DNA of 64,000 nt from Hyalangium minutum (GTDB lineage Bacteria > Myxococcota > Myxococcia > Myxococcales > Myxococcaceae), in assembly GCF_000737315.1 (NCBI RefSeq), contig NZ_JMCB01000002.1, forward strand, positions 620,001-684,000. The letters are read 5' to 3'. Shown one piece after another: positions 4,753 to 48,708 of the stretch (position 1 is the first letter of the stretch; each line of letters begins with the position of its first letter). The notes beneath the pieces are model-generated. The model was not told the origin of the DNA and ran no database searches. It saw only the letters and a list, made by a program, of their open reading frames with translations. The translations under genes and the position numbers were made by a program.

Positions 4753-6267
4753 ATGAACGCCACCGCCGCCCCAGAAGCCACCACCTCCGAGGTGAAGGCT
4801 CGCGCCCAGAAGGGCGTGCTCGTGCTGGCCGCCCGCACCCTGGTATCGCAGGGGCTGCGGGTGGTGAGCGCCCTGTGTCTGTCGCGCCTGTTGTTCCCGG
4901 ATGACTATGGCCTGTTCGGCATCGTCTCGTACGCGGCCACACTGGGGGCGTACATGGGGGACCTGGGGCTGAGCGCCGCGCTGGTTCGCCAGACCCGCGA
5001 GCCCACGGCGGAAGAGACCTCGACGCTCTTTTGGGGCCACCAGGTGCTGACGGGGCTCGTCGCCATCATCGTGTCGCTGCTGGCACCCACGCTCGTCGCG
5101 GGCTACGCGCTGGGCGCCCAGGCGCTGCCGATGCTCTACGTCATGGCCGCGGGCCTGTTTTTCTACTCCCTGCGCGTCATCCCGCTGATGGCGCTGGAGC
5201 GGCAGCTGGCCTTCCCGGTCATCGCTCGCGCCGAAATCATCGAGAACCTGGCGCAGGTGGTCATCACCATCGGGCTGGCGGCGCTGGGGTGTGGGGCCTG
5301 GGCGCTGGCGGGAGGCGGGCTGGCGCGCGGAGTGGTGGGGTTGGTGTGCATCTGGATGGCGTCTCCCTGGCGGCCCCAGTTCACCTTCCACGGCTCGATC
5401 ATCCGGAGGCTGCTGGGGTTCGGGCTGGCGTACCAGCTGCCGCCGATCGTCGCGGCGTTCACGGCGGGCTGGGTGCCGCTCGTGGTGGGACGGGTGCTGG
5501 GCAAGGACTCGGTGGGGCTCGTCAACTGGGCGTGGGCGCTGGCCTCCACGCCGATGATGCTCAGCGCGATCCTCAACCGCGTGGCCTTCCCGGCCTACTG
5601 CCGGCTGCAGGATGACCCAGTGGGCTTCGCGGAGTACCTGCGCACCTCGCTGCGGCGCCTGTCCGCGGCGCTCTGCCTGCTCATTCCGTTGGCAGTGCTG
5701 GCGGTGCCGGTGGCCGTGCCACTCCTGTTCGGCGAGCGCTGGGTGCCTGCGGTGCCGCTGGTGCAGTGGTTCAGCATGGAGTGCATCCTCGTCACGCTCA
5801 CGGGGCTGCTGGCCACCGCGCAGAACGCGGGCGGGCGGCCGTGGGAGCGGCTCGCCGTCACGGTGGGCGTGGGCGCCTCGAAGTGGGCGCTGGGGCTCTG
5901 GCTCATCCATCGCTTCGGGCTCAACGGCGTGGGGCCGCTGGGTGTCGTCGTGGGCCTGGGCGAGCTGTGGGTGACGGCGTGGCTCGTCTCTCGGCTCAAC
6001 CCCGCGCTGCGAGGGATTGTGACGGAGGTGGTGGAGCCTTTCGTCACCGTGGGTCTGCTGCTGCTGGGAGCCTGCCTCGCCGCGGCGTACGCCTTCCGGG
6101 AGGGGCTGTGGGCGCAGGCGCTCGCCGGTGGGGTGCTGTTCTCGGGCCTCTTCCTGCTGCGGGAGCGGTTGCCGGGGCGAGTACCGTTGGTGGCGGAGCT
6201 GCGGACCATCGTGGCGCTCGTCCGAGCGCGGCGCAGGGGCGTGGCGCCGGGAGGGGCCGTGCCATGA
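4753..6267 (+). CDS. wzx: Wzx/PST-family polysaccharide flippase
   Basis: LSRLLFPDDYGLFG and DLGLSAALVR motifs; about 12-14 TM segments; located among glycosyltransferases. Confidence 0.88.
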   Translation: MNATAAPEATTSEVKARAQKGVLVLAARTLVSQGLRVVSALCLSRLLFPDDYGLFGIVSYAATLGAYMGDLGLSAALVRQTREPTAEETSTLFWGHQVLTGLVAIIVSLLAPTLVAGYALGAQALPMLYVMAAGLFFYSLRVIPLMALERQLAFPVIARAEIIENLAQVVITIGLAALGCGAWALAGGGLARGVVGLVCIWMASPWRPQFTFHGSIIRRLLGFGLAYQLPPIVAAFTAGWVPLVVGRVLGKDSVGLVNWAWALASTPMMLSAILNRVAFPAYCRLQDDPVGFAEYLRTSLRRLSAALCLLIPLAVLAVPVAVPLLFGERWVPAVPLVQWFSMECILVTLTGLLATAQNAGGRPWERLAVTVGVGASKWALGLWLIHRFGLNGVGPLGVVVGLGELWVTAWLVSRLNPALRGIVTEVVEPFVTVGLLLLGACLAAAYAFREGLWAQALAGGVLFSGLFLLRERLPGRVPLVAELRTIVALVRARRRGVAPGGAVP

Positions 6268-11092: not shown

Positions 11093-12546
11093 TGCGGCGG
11101 TCTCTCCAAGGCGTCCCGGAGCTCGTCCCGTACGGCGTTTCGGGCCCTCACGGCTTCGGCTGCCGCTTCGCGATACTGCCGTACCAACCCCTCGATATCC
11201 CCAGGTGCGTCATCCCGGGCGCGAGGATTCTTCATGTCCAGATTGTAGCCCCGTGCCTGGACCTCTCCGATGCGGACCTTCCAGGCGTGCTCGGTCTCCT
11301 GGCGATGGGTCCACCAGTGCTTCTCGGGCTCGAACTCCTCGAGGCGCAGTGGCCGCGTCTTCGAATAGCTCCTGGCTCCGGCGGGGTACGGGTGCTCGTA
11401 GAACCAGAGCTCCTGGGTGGGCTCGCCCTTCGTGAAGAAGAGCAGGTTCGTCTTGATACCCGTGTACGGATGGAAGACGCCCTTGGGCAGCCGGACGATG
11501 GTGTGGAGGTTGCACTCCCGGAGCAGCCGCTCCTTGATGCGCGCCTTCACGCCCTCGCCGAAGAGGATCCCGTCCGGTAGCACCAGTGCGGCCCGGCCTC
11601 CCTTTTTCAGCAGCGTCAGGATGAGCACCAGGAAGAGATCCGCTGTCTCCCGGCTGCGGAGCTCCGGCGGGAAGTGGGTTTCGAGCCCGTTCTCCTCGAT
11701 GCCTCCGAACGGTGGGTTCGTGAGGATGACGTCGACCTGGTCCTCAGGGCCGTAGTCTCGCAGGGGACGCGCCAGCGCGTTCCCGTGATGGATGTTCGAA
11801 GGCACTTCAATGCCGTGCAACAGCATGTTCGTCACGCACAGCACGTGAGGCAGCGGCTTCTTCTCTACCCCCAAGATGCTCGCCTGCAGCGCCGCCTCAT
11901 CCCGGGGGCTCTTCACGTCCTGGGTGCGCATGTGCTCGAGCGCACAGGTGAGAAAGCCACCCGTGCCGCACGCCGGGTCCAGCACCTTCTCTCCGAGCCT
12001 CGGGTTGACCTGGCTGATGATGAACTGCGTCACCGCTCGCGGTGTGTAGTACTCGCCTGCGTTGCCGGCGTTCTGCAGGTCCGCGAGGAGCTTCTCGTAG
12101 AGGTCCCCCAGCTCGTGCCGATCCGAGGCCCGGTGGAGATCGAGCGCGTTGAGCTTCTGGATGACCTGCCGCATCAACGTGCCCGACTTCATCGCGTTGT
12201 GGGCGTCCTCGAACACCCCTCGCACCACGGCCGCCATGGTTGCGTGCTTCCCCTTGGCTGGGAGCGCCTTCAGGGTCTTGAACAGGTCATGGTTGACGAA
12301 GTCCAGGAGCGCCTCGCCCGTGAGCCCCTCCGGGTTCTTCGCCCAGGTGCGCCACCGCAGCCGCTCCGGGATGGGAGACGTGTAGCTCGGGTTCCGCTGC
12401 TCCTGCTCCGCCTCGTGGCCGTCGAAGGCCTTCAGGAAGAGCATCCACACGAGCTGGCTGAGGCGCTGGGCGTCTCCGTCCACGCCCGCGTCCTTCCGCA
12501 TGATGTCCTGGAGGCTCTTGATAGTCGTCCCCGTCGACATGGCCAT
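11089..12546 (-). CDS. hsdM: Type I R-M N6-adenine methyltransferase (EcoAI/type IB-like)
   Basis: IKSLQDIMRKDAGVDGDAQRL, GEYYTPR, DPACGTGGFL and NPPF; 4-nt overlap with hsdS. Confidence 0.95.
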   Translation of the reverse strand: MAMSTGTTIKSLQDIMRKDAGVDGDAQRLSQLVWMLFLKAFDGHEAEQEQRNPSYTSPIPERLRWRTWAKNPEGLTGEALLDFVNHDLFKTLKALPAKGKHATMAAVVRGVFEDAHNAMKSGTLMRQVIQKLNALDLHRASDRHELGDLYEKLLADLQNAGNAGEYYTPRAVTQFIISQVNPRLGEKVLDPACGTGGFLTCALEHMRTQDVKSPRDEAALQASILGVEKKPLPHVLCVTNMLLHGIEVPSNIHHGNALARPLRDYGPEDQVDVILTNPPFGGIEENGLETHFPPELRSRETADLFLVLILTLLKKGGRAALVLPDGILFGEGVKARIKERLLRECNLHTIVRLPKGVFHPYTGIKTNLLFFTKGEPTQELWFYEHPYPAGARSYSKTRPLRLEEFEPEKHWWTHRQETEHAWKVRIGEVQARGYNLDMKNPRARDDAPGDIEGLVRQYREAAAEAVRARNAVRDELRDALERPPQ

Positions 12547-39696: not shown

Positions 39697-40563
39697 ATGG
39701 CGATCTCTGTCGACAACCGCAGCCGCACCTACAGCCGCTCCTACGAGCAGAACCGGACCACGGGCGAGACCACGCGGACCACGCGCAGCACCAGCGAGCG
39801 CGGCCAGCCGGTGAAGCCTGAGGTGAAGAACAACGGCGTGAAGCCGAAGGCTGAGGTCGAGCTGTTCAAGGACAAGTTCGAGGCCGAGGCCAACGCGGTC
39901 TCCGCCGAGGGCAAGTTCGGCAAGCCGGGCAGCGCGCTCTCCGGTGAGGGCAACGTGAAGGTGGGCTCGGCTGGCGTGTCGGGCGAGGGCTCGGTGACTG
40001 CGGATCTGGCCAAGGGCCAGGTGAAGGCCGAGGGTAAGGCCGAGGCGCACGCCAACCTCGTGAGCGCCGAGGGCAAGGTGAAGTCCGAGTACGGCATCGG
40101 CAGCACCGAGGCGTCGGCCAAGGGCAACGTGGGCGCCGAGGCCAGCGTCAAGGGCGAGGTGGTGGTGGATCCGCTGCACGGCGACGTGGCGGCCTCCGCG
40201 GGCGGCGAGGCCTTCGTCGGGGCGCGTGCCTCGGCCGAGGTGGCGCAGACGGTCGGCCCGGCCACCGCGAAGGTGGGCGGTGAGGTGACCGCGGGCCTGG
40301 GCGCCGAGTTCGAGGCGGACGTGGGCCTGAAGGATGGCAAGCTCTCGGCCAACTTCGACATCGGCGCGACGCTGGGCATCGGCGCCAGCGTGGAGTTCGG
40401 CGTCGAGGTGGACGTGGGCAAGGTGGCCAGCGGCGTGAAGGACGCGGCCGGCGCGGTGGCGGACGTGGCCAGCAACGTGGCCGACAAGGCCGGCGACGTG
40501 GTCAGCGGCGCGGCCGACAAGGCCAAGGACCTGGCGGGCAAGGTCCTCGACATCGGCTGGTAG
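39697..40563 (+). CDS. Ala/Gly/Val-rich repetitive hypothetical protein
   Basis: Very strong GC3 bias; repeated beta-strand-like motifs followed by an amphipathic LEA-like tail. Confidence 0.75.
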
Positions 40564-43342: not shown

Positions 43343-43468
43343 GGCGTGCCTCTCTTGAGAGGGAAGCAGCTCGAGAGGCGATAGTCAGGGTCGCAGGCGA
43401 TGGGCAGGCTCACATGCGCCAGCTTGCCAGTGGGGGACCGTCCCCGGCTACACCCCAGACAGCAGGGT

Positions 43469-43987
43469 TCACCGGGGGCGGGTGACGAGCTCCTCGCGGC
43501 CGATGGGGCTGAGGCCTTGGGCCAAGAGCTTCCGGGCGGCGAGGACGGAGACGCAGTCGTCGGTGCTGTGGATGTCGCCGTAGAAGGTGAGGAGGGTGGG
43601 GGGCTCGACGACGCGGACTTCGCCGACCTGGACCGAGGGGACACGCCGCACGAAGACATCGAGGAGAACCTTCACGCCATCCACGTGGCGGGCGTAGCGA
43701 TAGAAGTTCTCCGAAGTGGCATCGAAGCGGGTCCAGGTGCGGGTGTAGCCGCGCTGGGTGAGGGCGTGAATGAGCTCGGGGAGACGCTCGGGCTCGACGA
43801 AGAGGTCCACGTCCTTGTGGTCGTGGAAGATCTTCAGCTCCTCGTGGGGAGGGGCCATGAAGTGCCAGGCCCAACCGCCGGAGAGGGTGACGAGCGGTGC
43901 GATGGATCGCACCTCCCGTTCGAGCACGCTGAGGCGCTCGAGGTTCCAGGGCTCATCGGCCCGTTTCGGATTGCGAGGATCTCCCAT
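43469..43987 (-). CDS. Nucleotidyltransferase-fold protein
   Basis: LSGGWA...HKDVDLFV resembles the Pol-beta GG...DxD signature of ANT(2'')/Lin-type enzymes. Confidence 0.6.
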   Translation of the reverse strand: MGDPRNPKRADEPWNLERLSVLEREVRSIAPLVTLSGGWAWHFMAPPHEELKIFHDHKDVDLFVEPERLPELIHALTQRGYTRTWTRFDATSENFYRYARHVDGVKVLLDVFVRRVPSVQVGEVRVVEPPTLLTFYGDIHSTDDCVSVLAARKLLAQGLSPIGREELVTRPR

Positions 43988-44074
43988 GGCCCGGCTCCTT
44001 GTAGAGGCGGGCGCACTGGACGGAAGGGGCCGGGGAGGTCTGACGGTTGGTGTGGCCACCGCGCCCAGGAGTTC

Positions 44075-44812
44075 TCAACCTTTGTGCAGAGCAGCGAACT
44101 CAGCGACAAAGTCCAGGTACCGGAGAATGGCCTGCTGGTGGTCGCCGTTACAGTCTCGTAAATACTTGGCGGGCCAGCCCTCCTCAGGAAGTTCCCGTTT
44201 GACGTCTCTCAGCCAATTGCCAAAGTTCGCGTACAGTTCGTTCTTGAGATGGTTGTCATCCGCGCAGGCGTTATACCCATCGATGAACGTATTGAAGCGC
44301 TCTGCGTTGGTGTTTTCGAGATGTTCATGGAGCCGCCCGTGCAACAGGCTTTCGCGGATGCACAGCAGGTAGGAGAGGGTATCTCGGGCGGCTGGCGGCC
44401 CTTCTTCAGTCTCAGGCGGCTGGGCAGGAGTCGCGTCGCTGGGCAAAGCCCGCTTCGAGCGTGGGGAAGTGGAGAATTCATGGACCCAGTCAAGGTACGT
44501 CCCAATCGCTCGTTCGTGCTCTCCCCCCGCCATGGACAGATGTCGCTCGGTGGCTTTTTCTATCGGCTCTTCGCGTCTCGTGCTCCAAAGCCACTCGCAG
44601 AATCGAGCATACGCTTCATCGGAGAGCTGATGTTCACGCAGGCAGGCGCGATACCCCTCGATAAAGCCTGCAAGCCGCTCCACAAGCGGATCTCCGATAT
44701 GAATGAAAAGTCTACCCTTCTTCATGTCCCGGTGAAGCAGGAGCAAGGCCTCCAGTGTTCCTACGGCCTCAAGATGCCCAAGGGTGGGCTCGAATTCGTG
44801 TTCATGGCTCAT
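44075..44812 (-). CDS. Putative immunity protein made of two homologous ~100-aa domains
   Basis: Internal duplication (FIEGY..C..F.EWL..H.RAI..YLDWVHEF vs FIDGY..C..F.NWL..H.QAI..YLDFVAEF); ATGA overlap with the upstream gene. Confidence 0.65.
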   Translation of the reverse strand: MSHEHEFEPTLGHLEAVGTLEALLLLHRDMKKGRLFIHIGDPLVERLAGFIEGYRACLREHQLSDEAYARFCEWLWSTRREEPIEKATERHLSMAGGEHERAIGTYLDWVHEFSTSPRSKRALPSDATPAQPPETEEGPPAARDTLSYLLCIRESLLHGRLHEHLENTNAERFNTFIDGYNACADDNHLKNELYANFGNWLRDVKRELPEEGWPAKYLRDCNGDHQQAILRYLDFVAEFAALHKG

Positions 44813-45351
44813 GGTGTCGAAACGACCTCCCATGAGATCTGGATGCGTGCCTGCAATCGCAAAAGATAATCGTCGAATTTCATGCCGAGGGGGCCTGTAT
44901 AAGCATCATAAATCGACGCCCCGATTCTGACGGCTACGTGGTAACCCGCACGAGACACAGAAGCTTGGTTGCCTTCGGTCGTTTCGAAGACCATGTAGAT
45001 GGGTCTTTCGGTGCGAAAAGCGACGTACTCCGGGCGCTGTCCCAGTTGTGTGAAAGCTTGATGGATGGTGCGTGCAACATCCTGGCACTTCCCCGGAATC
45101 TGACTCGCAGCGCTGTAGGCCACCTGAAGGTTTCTCAGCCACGCCGGTGCCTGTTGCCCGGTGTGAACCTCGTACAGGGCGATGGCACCGGCGATATCTC
45201 CCCGAGCCAGATAGGCCAGCAGTTTGGCGCGGGTGGACTCTGTGACCGTCATCGCCGTCGCTTGCGTAGGAGGGACGGGGCCTGCTCCTGCGGGTGTGAT
45301 CAGGAGAAAGAGGAGCAGTACGAAGCTTCCCTGGCTACAGAAGTGACGCAT
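44809..45351 (-). CDS. Secreted papain-fold protein (Tox-PL2-like putative toxin)
   Basis: GGAGG RBS; signal peptide (LLLFLLITPAGA); Cys-His-Asp pattern GKCQDVA / GYHVAV / IYDAY..P.GM. Confidence 0.65.
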   Translation of the reverse strand: MRHFCSQGSFVLLLFLLITPAGAGPVPPTQATAMTVTESTRAKLLAYLARGDIAGAIALYEVHTGQQAPAWLRNLQVAYSAASQIPGKCQDVARTIHQAFTQLGQRPEYVAFRTERPIYMVFETTEGNQASVSRAGYHVAVRIGASIYDAYTGPLGMKFDDYLLRLQARIQISWEVVSTP

Positions 45352-45386
45352 GGGCGACCCTCCGTAAGAGATCGATAGGTGAGATG

Positions 45387-46259
45387 CTAGGCGCCTGGAC
45401 GTTTCGGATCCAAGGCGTCTCGCACCGCGTCTCCGAGGAAGTTGAACCCCAGCACTGTGAGCGCCAGCGCGAGCCCTGGGAACACCGCCACGTGGGGAGC
45501 CACGAGGAGGTACTGCGTTCCCTGGTCCACCAGCGCGCCCCAGGAAGGTGTTCCCGGCGGTGCGCCCAGGCCCAGGAAGCTCAGTGAGGCTTCGGCCAGG
45601 ATGGCTCCGGGAAAGGCGAAGGTCGCTTGGATGAGCAGCGGCCCCGCCGCGTTCGGCAGAAGGTGACGGAACAGGATGCGCGCGTTCCCGCTCCCCAGGG
45701 CCCGCGCCGCCTGCACATATTCGCGCTCGCGCAGCGTGAGCACCTGTCCCCGTGCCAGTCGCGCGTAGCCCGTCCATCCCGTGAAGGACAGCGCGAAGAC
45801 CACGTTGGCCAGGCTGGGCCCCAGCACCGACGTGATGAAGATGGCCAACAGGATGCCCGGGAAGGCGAGCAGCACGTCCACCAGCCGCATCACCACCTCA
45901 TCCACCCAGCCGCCCACGTACCCTGCCAGTCCTCCGAGCGTCACTCCGACGAGCGCTGACACCACCACCGCGAAGAACGCCACCACCAGCGACACCCGCG
46001 CTCCGTAGAGCACATGGGTGAGCACGTCGATCCCGTTCTCCCCCGCGCCTAGCAGGTGCGCGGTGCTTGGTGGTGCCAGCTCCGCGGAGAGTTCGATCGC
46101 TTCTGGCGAATAGGGACTGATCACCGGAGCCAGCAGCGCGGTGAGCACCAGCAGCACCGCCACGCCCAGCCCGAACCGGCCTCCCAGCGTGCGCAGCCGG
46201 AAGCCCCGGCGCGGCACAACGCCCGGTGTCACCGCCGTGAGGGGAGAGGCCTCGCTCAT
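45387..46259 (-). CDS. Peptide/nickel ABC transporter permease (DppC/OppC-like)
   Basis: YGARVSL, MRLVDVLLAFP, REYVQAARALG and EASLSFLGLG. Confidence 0.92.
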   Translation of the reverse strand: MSEASPLTAVTPGVVPRRGFRLRTLGGRFGLGVAVLLVLTALLAPVISPYSPEAIELSAELAPPSTAHLLGAGENGIDVLTHVLYGARVSLVVAFFAVVVSALVGVTLGGLAGYVGGWVDEVVMRLVDVLLAFPGILLAIFITSVLGPSLANVVFALSFTGWTGYARLARGQVLTLREREYVQAARALGSGNARILFRHLLPNAAGPLLIQATFAFPGAILAEASLSFLGLGAPPGTPSWGALVDQGTQYLLVAPHVAVFPGLALALTVLGFNFLGDAVRDALDPKRPGA

Positions 46260-47167
46260 GAGCGCCTCCTGACGCGCGGGTCCACGAGCGTGTACGCCAC
46301 GTCCGTCAGCGTGTTCACGAGCACGTAGCACAGCGTGAACACCATCACCGTGGCCCGCACGGTGTTGTAGTCGCGCTTCTCAATGGCCGTGAGCAGCAAG
46401 GTCCCCATCCCCGGCCACGCGAACACCTTCTCCGTCACGATCGCTCCGCCCAGCAGCGTGCCGAACTCCAGCCCCAGTACCGTGAGGATCGGCAACAGCG
46501 CGTTCCGGAACGCGTGCTTCCACAGCACCGCGTGCGGGCTCAGCCCCTTGGCCTTGGCCACCGTGACGAAGTCCTCGCGCAAGGTCTCCAGCATCGCAGC
46601 TCGCGTCATACGAGACAGGAAGGCCGCCAGCGCTGTGCCCAGCGTCACCGAGGGCAGCACCAGGTGGCTCCACGACTCAGCGCCGGATACCGGCAGCCAG
46701 TCGAGCCACAGCGCGAACACGATGATCAACATCGGCCCCAGCCAGAAGCGCGGCACCGCCACTCCCGCCACCGCCACTCCCATCGCCGCCGAGTCCACCG
46801 CCGTCCCCTTACGCGCCGCTGCCGCCACGCCCAGAGGAATCGCAATCCCCACCGCGATGAGCAGCGAGGCCACCGTGAGCTGTAGCGTCTTCGGCAGCGC
46901 CTCGCCAATCGCCGGCAGCACCTTCCTCTGGAACGGAGGCAGCGAGGTGCGCAGCTCGCCCGTGGCGAAGTCCCTCGAGAACGTCCACAGCTGCGCGTAC
47001 CACGCTTGGTCCATGCCCACCGCGCGCCGCAGTGCCTCGCGATCCACCTCGGAGGCCTGTTCCCCCAACATCACGTCGATTGGATCCCCCGGCACCAGGT
47101 TCAGGAACAGTGAGATGAGCAGCAGCGCCCCCACCACCGCGATGCCCGCCGACACCAGGCGCCTCAT
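46256..47167 (-). CDS. Peptide ABC transporter permease (DppB/OppB-like)
   Basis: VPGDP, LPKTLQL, EDFVTVAKAKG, VTEKVFAWPGMG and RDY. Confidence 0.92.
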   Translation of the reverse strand: MRRLVSAGIAVVGALLLISLFLNLVPGDPIDVMLGEQASEVDREALRRAVGMDQAWYAQLWTFSRDFATGELRTSLPPFQRKVLPAIGEALPKTLQLTVASLLIAVGIAIPLGVAAAARKGTAVDSAAMGVAVAGVAVPRFWLGPMLIIVFALWLDWLPVSGAESWSHLVLPSVTLGTALAAFLSRMTRAAMLETLREDFVTVAKAKGLSPHAVLWKHAFRNALLPILTVLGLEFGTLLGGAIVTEKVFAWPGMGTLLLTAIEKRDYNTVRATVMVFTLCYVLVNTLTDVAYTLVDPRVRRRS

Positions 47168-48708
47168 GGCTTCACCATCCGCGCCCTCGCCAGCGAGCTG
47201 AGGAAGCCGTGCGCGCTGGGCTCGAAGCCCTCGAGCCGCCGAGATACCACCGCCACGCTGCTCTCGTGCCACAGCGGCGCATATGGCAGCAGCACATCCA
47301 GCCGCGCCTGGGCCTTTGCATAGAGCGCCTTGCGCTCCGAGGGCTCCACCCGGTTCGCCTCCTCCAGCAGCGCGTCCAGCTCCGCGTCCCTCAGCGCGCC
47401 CCGGTTCAGCCCTCCCCAGTGGTTCTCCTCCGTGGGCACGTTCTTCGAGTGGTACACGTTGCGCAGCAGGTCCGGCTCAATCACCGACGCCCACTTCAGC
47501 GTCACCATCTCGAAGTTCCCGCGCCGGATGTCGTTGAAGAACGTGCCGAACTCCAGCGGCCGCACCTCCACAGCCACGCCCCCGCGCGCCAATTGCTCCT
47601 GGAGCACCAGCGCCACCGACTTCCGGAACCGGTCCGTGCTCACCTTCAGGCTCAGCCGCAGCCTCGGCTGGCCTCCGGGCCCGTCCGGATCCACATAGCC
47701 CGCCTCATCCAGCAGTCGCGCCGCCTCGGCCGGGTCGTACCGGCAGCCCTCGCTCGGGCTGTAGGCCCAGTGCGTGCTCGGGAGCATCCCCGTGGCCGGC
47801 TTCGCCAAGCCGTGGAACTTGTGCTCCACCACCGGCTTCACATCGAGCAGGTGGCACACCGCCCGCCGCACCCGCTCGTCCGCCAAGGGCCCCGAGCGCA
47901 GGTTGAAGCCCAGGTACGCATAGCCTGTCCCCGGCCGCACCAGCACCCGCAAGCCTGGCTCCTTGCTCAGCAAGGGGAGCACCGCCGGAGACACCGCGTT
48001 CGTCACCAGATCCGCCCGGCCCTTGAGCAGCTCCAGCACCCGCGTCGTCTCGTCTCGCACCACCCGGAAGTACAGCCTCGGAATGGCCGGGCGACCTCCG
48101 TAATAGCCCTCGAAGGCCACCAGCGAGAGGTGCTCCTCGTCCGGTTGGGACTCAAACTGAAAGGCTCCCGCGCCCACCGGATGCTCCGCTTGCAGCGCCA
48201 CCCCGTCCGGCCCCGCACGCTCCGCTGGGACGATGCTCAGCGACAGCTCCGCCAGCAGCGCCGCGTACGGCCGGCGCAGGTGGAACCGCAGGGTGCGATC
48301 ATCAACCACCTCCACGGACTCCACCGCCTCGTACCGCTCCGCCTTCGGACTTTGCAGCGCGCGAGAGCGCACCCCGTCATAGGTGGCCTTCACGTCCTCG
48401 GCCGTGAGCGCCGTGCCGTCATGGAAGGTGAGCCCCGGGCGAAGGGTGAACTCCATGACGGTGGGGGACAGCGCCTGGAAGGACTCGGCCAGCGCGGGCA
48501 CCGGCCTGCTGCTGTCATCGAACGTGAGCAGCCCGGGCGCAATCAGCTGTCCTATCCGCTGGCCCGTGGCTGTCAGCGCGAAGCGGTCATCCACACTGTC
48601 CGGAGGCGCCTCCACCAGCACGGTGATTCCGTCGGGCGCAGGCTCCGGACGACACCCGGCTGTCAGTGCCAGCAACAACCCCAGGACCGTGTGGCGAAGC
48701 AAGGGCAT
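47164..48708 (-). CDS. Peptide ABC transporter substrate-binding lipoprotein (SBP family 5)
   Basis: Lipobox LTAGC; LRPGLTFHDGTALTAEDVKAT; PVGAGAF. Confidence 0.92.
   Translation of the reverse strand: MPLLRHTVLGLLLALTAGCRPEPAPDGITVLVEAPPDSVDDRFALTATGQRIGQLIAPGLLTFDDSSRPVPALAESFQALSPTVMEFTLRPGLTFHDGTALTAEDVKATYDGVRSRALQSPKAERYEAVESVEVVDDRTLRFHLRRPYAALLAELSLSIVPAERAGPDGVALQAEHPVGAGAFQFESQPDEEHLSLVAFEGYYGGRPAIPRLYFRVVRDETTRVLELLKGRADLVTNAVSPAVLPLLSKEPGLRVLVRPGTGYAYLGFNLRSGPLADERVRRAVCHLLDVKPVVEHKFHGLAKPATGMLPSTHWAYSPSEGCRYDPAEAARLLDEAGYVDPDGPGGQPRLRLSLKVSTDRFRKSVALVLQEQLARGGVAVEVRPLEFGTFFNDIRRGNFEMVTLKWASVIEPDLLRNVYHSKNVPTEENHWGGLNRGALRDAELDALLEEANRVEPSERKALYAKAQARLDVLLPYAPLWHESSVAVVSRRLEGFEPSAHGFLSSLARARMVKP

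Follow-up and report, generated by a model that had tools for sequence, protein, structure and literature searches.

Do two small overlapping genes that follow an ABC transporter operon in Hyalangium minutum encode a secreted toxin and its antidote? The question arose from an earlier note on a 64,000-nucleotide stretch of this genome (the window), which had read the pair as a stand-alone exported papain-fold toxin coupled to a tandem-domain immunity-like gene. From the genome comparisons and structure models described below we conclude that the mobile gene pair very likely specifies a cysteine-enzyme toxin for export and an antidote that stays in the cytoplasm. The case is well supported, but as the pair belongs to the known Tox-PL-2 family it is a rather ordinary discovery, which extends a framework published in 2012 and does not overturn current views. 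The features of the locus are collected in Table 1.

Table 1. Features of the toxin-partner locus, in window coordinates
Feature	Position	Strand	Remarks
Toxin gene	44809-45351	minus	180 aa including signal peptide; divergent Tox-PL-2 papain-fold enzyme (predicted)
GGAGG ribosome-binding site	45359-45363	minus	7 nt before toxin ATG (45351-45349); direct sequence reading
Toxin signal peptide (Sec/SPase I), residues 1-23	45283-45351	minus	predicted cleavage AGA/GP; rule-based reading
Predicted catalytic Cys89 codon	45085-45087	minus	C89(QDVA); N-terminus of helix 89-102 in the model
Predicted catalytic His138 codon	44938-44940	minus	H138(VAV); in strand 137-143 of the model
Predicted catalytic Asp149 codon	44905-44907	minus	D149(AY); directly past strand 146-148 in the model
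Partner (immunity-like) gene	44075-44812	minus	245 aa, acidic, without signal peptide, two homologous all-alpha domains
Partner domain 1, N-terminal copy	44465-44767	minus	hmmsearch with single-domain profile, E 1.9e-41; more diverged, EGW/YLRDC motif lost
Partner domain 2, C-terminal copy	44084-44386	minus	hmmsearch E 1.5e-46; family motif WLRDVK.E.P.EGWPAKYLRDC.GDH kept
ATGA stop/start overlap of toxin and partner	44809-44812	minus	toxin TGA 44811-44809, partner ATG 44812-44810
Toxin-immunity cassette as a unit	44048-45399		1,352-nt insertion/deletion relative to the closely related contig L034, which is without the cassette
Neighbouring 172-aa ORF	43469-43987	minus	minimal-nucleotidyltransferase motif; same hypervariable slot, outside the cassette

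The toxin gene and its export signal

The toxin reading frame has 79 homologs with E values down to 1e-93 and is thus a real gene; all homologs found are about 180 amino acids long. Its start codon is supported by the GGAGG site and by the N-termini of the homologs. The protein begins with MRHFCSQGSFVLLLFLLITPAGA, followed by the predicted cleavage site and GPVPP, and the signal has a basic n-region, then a hydrophobic core of 9 residues, and ends in A-G-A (positions -3 to -1). The only cysteine of the N-terminal region (position 5) lies ahead of the hydrophobic core; since none follows the hydrophobic region, there is no lipobox. The same holds for the family: among 62 full-length homologs 59 begin with a hydrophobic, signal-type N-terminus that carries an A-x-A cleavage motif, and a lipobox-like motif is present in none. 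The ribosome-binding site and the Sec-type signal of the 180-aa ORF, both claimed in the earlier note, were thereby confirmed on the minus strand, the signal being of the SPase I type, and the uniform length and the missing lipobox agree with the note's description of the toxin as carrier-less, exported and not SitA-like.

Two other export routes were considered and rejected. A few homologs are named 'Lipoprotein' in UniRef, yet none of them has a lipobox. The twin-arginine pair of some Archangium homologs (MRRLR...), which had suggested Tat export, is not a conserved feature, and the window toxin has MRHF at this place.

The N-termini also bear on another reading, in which the pair would work inside the cell as a type II toxin-antitoxin or anti-phage defence module, its 'signal peptide' being a mis-called start or a membrane anchor. 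Such a module would fit two small translationally coupled genes of which the second has an acidic product, the label 'ParE' given by JGI to two homologs, and the partner at the sister locus L028, which is fused to a PD-(D/E)XK domain matching a PADLOC candidate. The signal-type N-terminus with its A-x-A motif throughout the family and the supported start codon speak against it, as do the searches: PADLOC returned no match for the window proteins, and Pfam and NCBIfam revealed neither a toxin-antitoxin family nor any similarity to ParE, which leaves that name without support as an identity for the toxin. We consider this module most improbable.

Tox-PL-2 membership, catalytic residues and fold

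The assignment of the toxin to the Tox-PL-2 papain-fold domain, made in the earlier note, was borne out by homologs above the Pfam threshold, by a papain/transglutaminase-like model and by an alignment with the toxin domain of an RHS protein. In the HMMER search that the note had proposed, the window toxin alone scored 18.7 bits (E 0.0021) against Pfam Tox-PL-2 (PF15643), under the cut-off of 25 bits. Nine of 10 tested homologs exceed the gathering cut-off (25.7-30.2 bits, profile positions 10-102 of 103), and the window toxin is 50-66% identical to the homologs that pass. The profile was matched by 41 of 42 toxin homologs (E<=0.01; best E 4.7e-8), and NCBI has named several homologs 'papain fold toxin domain-containing protein'. 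A canonical Tox-PL-2 sequence aligned directly to the profile of the toxin family at no better than E 0.083, though with its Cys, His and Asp in register. That the window toxin is a member of the already described Tox-PL-2 family is well supported.

Both the family and its signal-peptide-only architecture were described in 2012 by Zhang, Iyer, Aravind et al., who reported 'T2SS' (signal-peptide-only) and RHS architectures in delta-proteobacteria and cyanobacteria (2012, Biol Direct 7:18; PMC3482391). The systems described there share with the window pair and its relatives the papain-like fold, the Cys-His-Asp triad, the signal-peptide and RHS forms, the occurrence in delta-proteobacteria and cyanobacteria and an all-alpha partner; they differ in the sequence signature. 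Of the published 'C, NxxH, DN' the window toxin keeps C, H and D, but it has RAGYH (A135) in place of NxxH and Ala in place of the second Asn. An Asn three residues ahead of His is found only in part of the toxin family (e.g. RNGYH) and is missing from the window toxin's own clade, and the residue after Asp149 is invariably Ala, never Asn. A canonical Tox-PL-2 member (L111) keeps the full signature. Since the Asn residues of 'NxxH ... DN' are missing, the window family is a divergent Tox-PL-2 subfamily, as its low profile score also indicates. The signature Asn residues lie outside the catalytic triad.

The C...H...D pattern of the earlier note was confirmed. Across 42 toxin homologs Q84, C89, Q90, H138 and D149 are invariant, and C89, H138 and D149 align with the Cys, His and Asp of the RHS C-terminal domain and of the canonical Tox-PL-2 protein. 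In the AlphaFold (AF2) model of the toxin (pLDDT 84.9), a check of the triad likewise proposed in the earlier note, Cys89 begins a helix, while His138 and Asp149 fall on adjacent strands or next to them, consistent with a triad. The best Foldseek match of the model is the glutamine amidase NTAQ1 (probability 1.0, E 2e-3), followed by protein-glutaminase, Pasteurella toxin, transglutaminase 3 and N-acetyltransferases. All top matches are papain/transglutaminase-like enzymes, not NlpC/P60, at marginal values (E about 2e-3, TM about 0.41, identity 14-18%). A search of PDB sequences with the toxin profile gave a chance match only (E 0.4). The mature toxin of about 155 residues thus appears to be a papain/transglutaminase-fold enzyme with the invariant predicted triad Cys89-His138-Asp149.

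The alignment that links the toxin to polymorphic toxins was obtained with hhalign. Window residues 35-168 of the toxin family aligned with the C-terminal toxin domain of an RHS protein (L113; RHS repeats E 3e-76) at a probability of 98.4% and E 5e-15, and the aligned domain begins directly past the core-end motif '...DPSGQ'. The structured core of the mature toxin (about residues 35-168) is homologous to the domain that this RHS polymorphic toxin carries at its C-terminus. In front of the Pfam domain the family has about 50 further conserved, helical residues, which the RHS-carried version shares. The 'short helical N-domain' of the earlier note is modelled with a pLDDT of about 96 but does not stand by itself as a module, since the stretch aligned with the RHS C-terminal toxin domain includes it.

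The partner and the hypervariable slot

The partner reading frame is also a real gene, as more than 120 homologs of its domain show; at 50% identity the domain forms about 250 sequence clusters. As the earlier note had stated, the ORF has 245 codons, overlaps the toxin TGA with its ATG and encodes two homologous domains, and the identical 4-nt overlap was called at homologous loci. The protein is acidic and lacks a hydrophobic N-terminus; having no signal peptide, it is predicted to be cytoplasmic. Its model consists of two domains and is all-alpha. Both one-domain and two-domain partners exist among the homologs; the toxins that accompany a two-domain partner group in a single clade, and the tandem duplication is limited to this clade, which includes the window toxin.

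The searches for a named family gave no result. No Pfam Imm family was matched by the partner (E<=10), by 14 close homologs (E<=1) or by 76 distant relatives (E<=1e-3); the partner matched no model of Pfam, NCBIfam or PADLOC, and Foldseek found nothing below E 1 for the partner model in the PDB. Weak UBA-like matches span only about 19 residues of two helices and were dismissed as a local motif resemblance. Imm73, which was published as an all-alpha immunity protein 'sometimes in 2-3 tandem copies' (PMC3482391), is the nearest description: the partner is all-alpha, adjoins Tox-PL-2 toxins and occurs in one or two copies. The two are likened by description only, as no Pfam model recognises the partner. 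With its about 250 clusters, no Pfam model and no solved fold, the partner domain merits a family definition and a structure.

Since the partner has no match in Pfam, NCBIfam or PADLOC or to a solved fold, its role is read from gene context alone, and from this context we infer that it is an immunity protein. The survey of myxobacterial genomes that the earlier note had called for supports the toxin-immunity pairing claimed there. In all 24 toxin loci whose downstream DNA could be inspected, the partner domain comes directly after the toxin and on the same strand. The signal-peptide form of the toxin is spread through the Archangiaceae, there too with the partner domain directly downstream, and the domain also follows Tox-PL-2 toxins immediately in at least two unrelated lineages. 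A distant partner relative stands behind the canonical Tox-PL-2 gene of L111, which scores 130 bits, and a two-domain relative behind the RHS toxin of L113, whose cassette is also low in GC. Tandem toxin-immunity-toxin-immunity arrays were found at two loci (L007, L022), extra partner genes upstream of the toxin at two others (L018, L020), and frameshifted toxins beside intact partners at three (L017, L019, L023). In two Stigmatella genomes the partner gene is an orphan, no toxin lying within 5 kb of it, and in Stigmatella sp. the orphan gene is intact.

The pair lies in an AT-richer patch directly after the ABC transporter operon, as had been noted before: GC is 0.54-0.59 over positions 44000-45200 as compared with 0.68-0.70 in the flanks, and the toxin gene starts 35 nt after the second ABC permease gene has ended. 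In nearly all of 18 modules measured GC is 6-14 points below that of the flanks. When the locus was compared by blastn with L034, homology stopped at position 9952 of L003 and resumed at 11305 (window positions 45400 and 44047), and these bounds coincide with the low-GC patch. The slot between the permease and the oxidase genes is empty in L031, holds only the 172-aa ORF in L034 and contains other cargo in L033, L028 and L032. Proteins of the flanks share 90-97% identity, whereas the toxin reaches 71-79%, as with its alleles in L028 and L029, and the partner 67%; the pair is likewise the faster-diverging part of the Archangium loci, and the module was found in at least six genomic contexts. 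The cassette is therefore an accessory element in a hypervariable slot and evolves faster than its neighbours. Near-isogenic loci with the slot empty or filled with other cargo or diverged alleles, together with the partner-only genomes, offer natural controls for competition experiments.

The cassette moves into the slot by recombination. No terminal direct or inverted repeats of at least 6 nt were found at its ends and no integrase or transposase near it, for which reason a site-specific mobile element was rejected and homologous recombination through the flanks is favoured. Neither toxin nor partner had a tblastn match among 72,556 plasmids, so the pair is not an obvious plasmid cargo. A scan for promoters and terminators revealed no promoter-like site and no minus-strand terminator that would mark the pair as an operon of its own. 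The neighbouring 172-aa nucleotidyltransferase-like ORF, which like toxin and partner gave only noise with NCBIfam, does not belong to the pair: it occurs without it in L033 and L034, which places it outside the cassette, and is replaced by unrelated genes in L028.

These comparisons also bear on a housekeeping reading, in which the toxin would be a periplasmic enzyme, e.g. a cell-wall or lipoprotein amidase, and the partner its cytoplasmic chaperone or regulator, and the pair would not be a conflict system. Cell-wall amidases are found among the papain-like folds, and the pair continues transporter genes in an operon-like manner in two contexts (ABC permease here, MatE in Archangium). A housekeeping function is difficult to reconcile with the absence of the pair from the same locus in the close relatives L031, L033 and L034, and with its patchy distribution over at least six contexts, low GC, rapid divergence and pseudogenised copies; moreover, the fold matches are transglutaminase/amidase-like, not NlpC/P60, and the protein is homologous to the tip of an RHS toxin. 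We regard this reading as very unlikely.

Proposed mechanism and comparison with known systems

We propose that the pair is probably a Tox-PL-2 two-gene polymorphic-toxin cassette in its minimal form, composed of an exported toxin and a cytoplasmic immunity partner. The toxin would cross the inner membrane via Sec, lose its signal to signal peptidase I, leave the cell by type II secretion or within outer-membrane vesicles and damage cells that lack the cognate partner. Translation of the partner is coupled to that of the toxin through the ATGA overlap. The partner would bind the toxin one-to-one and block it in the cytoplasm, which could shield the producer from toxin that folds before export and kin from incoming toxin; duplication of the partner domain may strengthen the binding or widen the range of toxin variants neutralised.

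The toxin would act on a protein substrate by thiol acyl-enzyme chemistry. Because of the nearest folds of the model, hydrolysis or transfer at the side-chain amide of glutamine (deamidation, transglutamination) is considered more likely than ordinary proteolysis. The reaction type taken from fold matches is a lead, not a result. NTAQ1, protein-glutaminase and the C3 domain of Pasteurella multocida toxin all deamidate glutamine and belong to the transglutaminase-like papain clan. They match the model best and have a comparable order and spacing of Cys...His...Asp, whereas their identity to the window toxin is only 14-18% and the E values are marginal. The modelled glutamine-amidase-like fold suggests a protein-deamidating antibacterial toxin; to our knowledge, few of these have been characterised. 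Tox-PL-2 has been assigned to the same transglutaminase cluster (PMC10318531).

If the proposal is correct, the pair is, at 1.35 kb, a small and genetically amenable example of the Sec-signal-only polymorphic toxins, which are the least understood class in diderms, and the main question that it raises is how such toxins reach their victims. No delivery machinery or secretion-system genes were found near the cassette. We know of no route by which a soluble, non-lipidated periplasmic protein enters the cytoplasm of another diderm cell, and this counts against our main reading, the partner being cytoplasmic.

The RHS C-terminal cassettes resemble the window pair in that a homolog of the toxin core stands past the core-end motif, GC is low and a two-domain partner relative comes next. 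Here a 23-residue Sec signal stands in place of the RHS shell, so that the pair lacks what RHS provides for encapsulation and delivery. The SitA/SitI systems of myxobacteria, which depend on outer membrane exchange, also use polymorphic toxins exported by Sec, each encoded on accessory DNA beside the gene for a cytoplasmic immunity protein (PMC5562445, PMC8546572). In contrast to the window family, SitA needs a lipobox Cys, which is lacking in all 62 homologs, and the window family is without an escort domain.

A bolder version of the proposal, which we put forward tentatively and hold to be rather unlikely, is that soluble, Sec-only, non-lipidated Tox-PL-2 enzymes add a fourth, as yet unrecognised route of antagonism to those that myxobacteria have in outer membrane exchange (SitA), type VI secretion and Rhs. 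They would enter the cytoplasm of a neighbour without a carrier, e.g. by vesicle fusion or by riding outer membrane exchange, and would deamidate or cross-link a conserved protein there; the partner would represent a new immunity fold, its duplication broadening the protection against diverged alleles.

In a rival explanation the toxin would be a secreted predatory or digestive enzyme and the partner a purely self-protective cytoplasmic inhibitor, after the model of barnase-barstar or staphopain-staphostatin, with neither killing of kin nor immunity to incoming toxin. The enzyme would then act outside the cell or in vesicles on proteins of prey or environment, and the partner would mop up enzyme that has folded before export. 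An exported enzyme with a cytoplasmic partner fits this explanation, and so do a Sec signal as the only export feature (no carrier, lipobox or nearby secretion-system genes), the secreted protein-glutaminase among the nearest folds, and the many lytic enzymes that myxobacteria secrete, partly in vesicles (PMC10433427). But the same domain serves an RHS polymorphic toxin as its C-terminal toxin, with a partner of its own; there are an intact orphan partner in Stigmatella sp., extra partner copies and tandem diverged modules; and the pair is polymorphic for presence and absence and has diverged more rapidly than the flanking genes. These features are typical of conflict cassettes, not of digestive enzymes, and we therefore judge the digestive explanation unlikely and retain the polymorphic-toxin cassette.

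In barnase-barstar and staphopain-staphostatin, a Sec-exported enzyme is likewise combined with a co-transcribed inhibitor that stays in the cytoplasm. The window pair follows the same logic of exported enzyme and cytoplasmic inhibitor, but it is homologous to neither, and neither of them forms polymorphic cassettes whose inhibitors also occur as orphans. The inhibitors also differ in fold: staphostatins are beta-barrels, whereas the partner described here is modelled as all-alpha.

The gene pair and its setting

The earlier note had described a 180-aa ORF with a ribosome-binding site, a Sec-type signal and a C...H...D pattern, coupled through a 4-nt stop/start overlap to a tandem-domain gene in an AT-richer patch directly after an ABC-transporter operon. 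This observation was confirmed in every detail. As read from the sequence, GGAGG stands 7 nt ahead of the ATG of the 180-aa ORF (toxin), the overlap with the 245-aa ORF (partner) reads ATGA, and GC is 0.54-0.59 over 44000-45200 vs 0.68-0.70 on either side. The operon upstream encodes a substrate-binding protein and two permeases; 35 nt separate the second permease gene from the toxin start, and the pair is followed by a 172-aa ORF and an FAD-binding oxidase gene. The contig is JMCB01000002.1 of assembly GCA_000737315.1, presumably from Hyalangium minutum strain DSM 14724. The interval between the second permease gene and the oxidase gene is referred to below as the slot, and homologous loci and proteins fetched for comparison carry L- and P-numbers, respectively.

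The operon has no adjacent ATPase genes in the window or in the relatives L028 and L029, and the toxin cassette occupies the place where dppD/F-like genes would be expected. The 172-aa ORF shows only weak matches, namely to NTP_transf_5, aminoglycoside 2''-adenylyltransferase and Lnu(D). L033 and L034, where the toxin pair is absent, have this ORF at 92% conservation, and it is missing from L028 and L031. A 288-aa protein elsewhere in the window has degenerate repeats (…SAEGK…GEGSV…), a composition rich in Gly, Ala, Glu and Val, and no Pfam family; the L028 version is 97% identical to it.

Table. Positions of the features in the window and in the homologous loci
Feature	Sequence	Positions	Strand	Remarks
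Toxin ORF	window	44809-45351	minus	180 aa, ATG start
Partner ORF	window	44075-44812	minus	245 aa
ATGA stop/start overlap	window	44809-44812	minus	toxin TGA over partner ATG
Slot	window	43343-45399		permease gene end 45387 to oxidase gene start 43342
Insertion/deletion relative to L034	window	44048-45399		1,352 nt
172-aa ORF	window	43469-43987	minus	minimal-nucleotidyltransferase motif (SGGW...DVDLF)
ABC-transporter operon	window	45387-48708	minus	
288-aa protein	window	39697-40563	plus	
Frameshift-broken toxin genes	L017; L019; L023	5941-6441; 5843-6399; 309-733		beside intact partners
Orphan partner	L026, Stigmatella sp. ncwal1	5001-5711		intact
Orphan partner	L027, S. aurantiaca	5001-5537		degenerate, internal deletions
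Partner-nuclease fusion (P0213)	L028	6543-8135		
Extended partner ORF	L032	7357-9018		
Archangium module regions	L001; L002	8625-19606; 4616-12555		
WD40-repeat protein genes	L017; L021	498-5837; 581-5728 (minus)		

The toxin: family, fold and export

A word-indexed search returned 79 toxin homologs, nearly all of about 180 aa, those with names coming from Archangium and Melittangium. Several carry the NCBI label 'papain fold toxin domain-containing protein', and relatives thus already bear a papain-fold toxin annotation. The JGI name 'plasmid stabilization system protein ParE' on two homologs (P0017, P0030) is without Pfam or NCBIfam support and is probably a mis-annotation.

In an alignment of 42 homologs Q84, C89, Q90, H138 and D149 are invariant, among them the Cys, His and Asp of the presumed triad. 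The reading as a Tox-PL-2 papain-fold domain is likewise supported: Pfam Tox-PL-2 (PF15643) matches 41 of the 42. Since the window toxin itself scores below the cut-off of 25 (18.7 bits, E 0.0021) while nine of ten tested homologs exceed it with nearly full profile coverage, the family is a branch of Tox-PL-2 that has diverged. Of the published 'C, NxxH, DN' signature it retains the triad and not the flanking Asn residues.

The AlphaFold2 model (pLDDT 84.9, pTM 0.76) places Cys89 at the N-terminus of a helix, with His138 and Asp149 in or beside neighboring strands, an arrangement that is, as modelled, papain-like. Foldseek against the PDB put human NTAQ1, an N-terminal glutamine amidohydrolase, at the top (probability 1.0, E 2e-3, ~118 aligned columns), followed by pseudomurein endoisopeptidase, transglutaminase 3, protein-glutaminase, the C-terminal domain of Pasteurella multocida toxin and arylamine N-acetyltransferases. 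These matches agree with a 2023 classification that places Tox-PL-2 within the transglutaminase cluster of papain-like enzymes (PMC10318531). Because the Foldseek scores are marginal, it is a lead only that the toxin may attack the side-chain amides of glutamine and not peptide bonds.

The N-terminus, MRHFCSQGSFVLLLFLLITPAGA with predicted cleavage before GP, combines a basic n-region with a hydrophobic core of nine residues and A-x-A ahead of the cleavage site; as no Cys follows the core, the signal is of the Sec/signal-peptidase-I type and not that of a lipoprotein. Among 62 full-length homologs 59 have a hydrophobic N-terminus, none has a lipobox, and 51 contain a single Cys beyond residue 35. 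The toxin is a papain-fold enzyme that carries an export signal and has its triad intact.

Its relation to classical polymorphic toxins emerged from three distant relatives of the partner domain, looked up in their own contigs. P0299, a two-domain protein, follows a 140-aa canonical Tox-PL-2 gene (130.6 bits, E 3e-38) that shows the complete C / NGHH / DN signature. P0243, also two-domain, is preceded by an RHS-repeat protein no shorter than 877 aa (RHS_repeat E 3e-76), whose last ~150 residues start right after the core-end motif '...YQYVGGAPTISTDPSGQ' and align with residues 35-168 of the window family (hhalign probability 98.4%, E 5e-15), N-terminal helices included and Cys, His and Asp in register; GC there is 0.63-0.70 over the RHS body and drops to 0.51-0.58 over the tip and partner gene. 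The sole neighbor preceding P0313 is a 134-aa gene with no Pfam match. The enzyme is homologous to the RHS toxin tip, and by this alignment its mature core is therefore the same unit as the exchangeable C-terminal domain of the RHS toxin, preceded in the window by a signal peptide. In agreement with this, both 'T2SS' (signal-peptide) and RHS architectures have been published for Tox-PL-2 from delta-proteobacteria and cyanobacteria (PMC3482391).

The partner and a possible mechanism

The tandem-domain character of the partner was borne out: its halves are 38% identical (E 3e-23), and its model is all-alpha, with two helical domains and a disordered linker at 124-140 (pLDDT 84.8). Because it is acidic (42 D+E vs 28 K+R) and its sequence has no hydrophobic segment, it should remain cytoplasmic. 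Nearly all of the 14 homologs of the full-length protein are two-domain; in Archangium the toxin is followed by a gene for one copy of the domain (100-123 aa). A single-domain profile found 121 proteins in Archangium, Hyalangium, Melittangium, Stigmatella, Cystobacter and Vitiosangium, and an exhaustive HMMER search 250 clusters at 50% identity (E<=1e-3). The toxins paired with two-domain partners, the window toxin included, form a single clade. The EGW/YLRDC motif is lost from the N-terminal copy in the window and its nearest relative and kept in the C-terminal copy and the single-domain proteins.

The domain has no match among Pfam, NCBIfam or PADLOC models, nor in any solved structure. Weak matches to UBA_4, UBA_HYPK and CUE (partner residues 216-234; homologs P0081 and P0084) span only the last two helices of each domain (GDHxxAIRKYLDFVAEF) and were discounted, being probably a local resemblance of helical motifs. 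By published description the partner fits Imm73, the all-alpha immunity protein of Tox-PL-2, which is 'sometimes found in 2-3 tandem copies' (PMC3482391).

A scan with one genome per species gave 22 loci. When six-frame translations of these and of the earlier-fetched loci were searched with hmmsearch, the partner domain lay directly downstream on the same strand in 24 of 24 toxin homologs having downstream DNA, which supports the reading as a toxin-immunity pair. The partner is a cytoplasmic two-domain protein strictly linked to the enzyme gene. Tandem tox-imm-tox-imm arrays occur in L007 and L022, and an additional partner gene precedes the toxin in L018 and L020. Three loci have frameshift-broken toxin genes beside intact partners; these are either toxins in decay whose immunity gene was retained, or errors of assembly. 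In two Stigmatella genomes a two-domain partner gene occurs on its own, no toxin lying within 5 kb of it. These orphan genes adjoin a divergently transcribed Ser/Thr kinase gene.

In the mechanism that we propose, the enzyme would cross the inner membrane via Sec with cleavage of its signal, be released through type II secretion or in vesicles, and harm cells without the cognate partner through thiol-dependent protein modification; the location of the partner suggests a cytoplasmic target, and neutralization would occur through direct binding. Delivery is the weak point. The recognized routes of myxobacterial antagonism comprise SitA lipoproteins passed on by outer membrane exchange, type VI secretion and Rhs proteins (PMC10433427); none of them suits a protein that is soluble and carrier-less.

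An accessory cassette with several alleles

In two metagenomic relatives the pair lies at the same locus between flanking proteins 90-97% identical to those of the window, the toxin being 71-79% and the partner 67% identical. A metagenome scan with the permease gene yielded further alleles of the slot and showed it to be hypervariable from one close relative to another. In L031 it is empty (160 nt), L034 has the 172-aa ORF only and L033 a GntR-like gene plus this ORF; in L028 and L032 the slot contains a toxin with a partner extended well past two domains, L028 also having an unrelated 176-aa ORF. The extension in L028 is a PD-(D/E)XK nuclease domain (PDDEXK_4, E 2.5e-10), which also matches the PADLOC candidate system PDC-S26; this may be an orphan toxin tip that was captured, or a fusion made in gene calling. 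The L032 partner is similarly extended, the nuclease identity being established in L028 only.

Compared with L034 the pair is a clean insertion/deletion, the left edge of which falls in the last codons of the permease gene. As there are no terminal repeats at its ends and no integrase or transposase gene near the pair, homologous recombination through the flanks is the simplest mechanism of exchange. Module GC is 6-14 points under the flanks in nearly all 18 modules measured, the module occurs in at least six different genomic contexts, and conservation at syntenic Archangium loci is nearly always lowest in the toxin gene; like the slot alleles, these findings point to a mobile accessory cassette, and as such the pair behaves.

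The main rival reading, a secreted enzyme with a purely self-protective inhibitor in the style of barnase and barstar, is less probable, as it is hard to reconcile with such fast divergence, the orphan partner genes, the tandem diverged modules and the RHS-carried homolog. The pair is a Tox-PL-2 toxin with an Imm73-like immunity protein, so likened by description, in a signal-peptide-only architecture. The novelty is modest and consists of a well-delimited cassette that has a natural allele series, an immunity domain family without model or structure, a modelled toxin fold that would point to glutamine-amide chemistry and a delivery route not explained by recognized systems.

In Archangium a MatE transporter gene immediately precedes the module (1-nt overlap or 3-nt gap), and a bpMoxR/bpX5/bpX6 gene set adjoins it, which in A. 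minus (L001) is flanked by two modules on opposite strands, 8 kb apart; in L002 a TsiV-family (type VI immunity) gene is nearby. In Hyalangium versicolor and a related MAG, where regional GC is low (0.56-0.59), the toxin module has beside it, on the opposite strand, the gene of a ~1,715-aa protein with many WD40 repeats.
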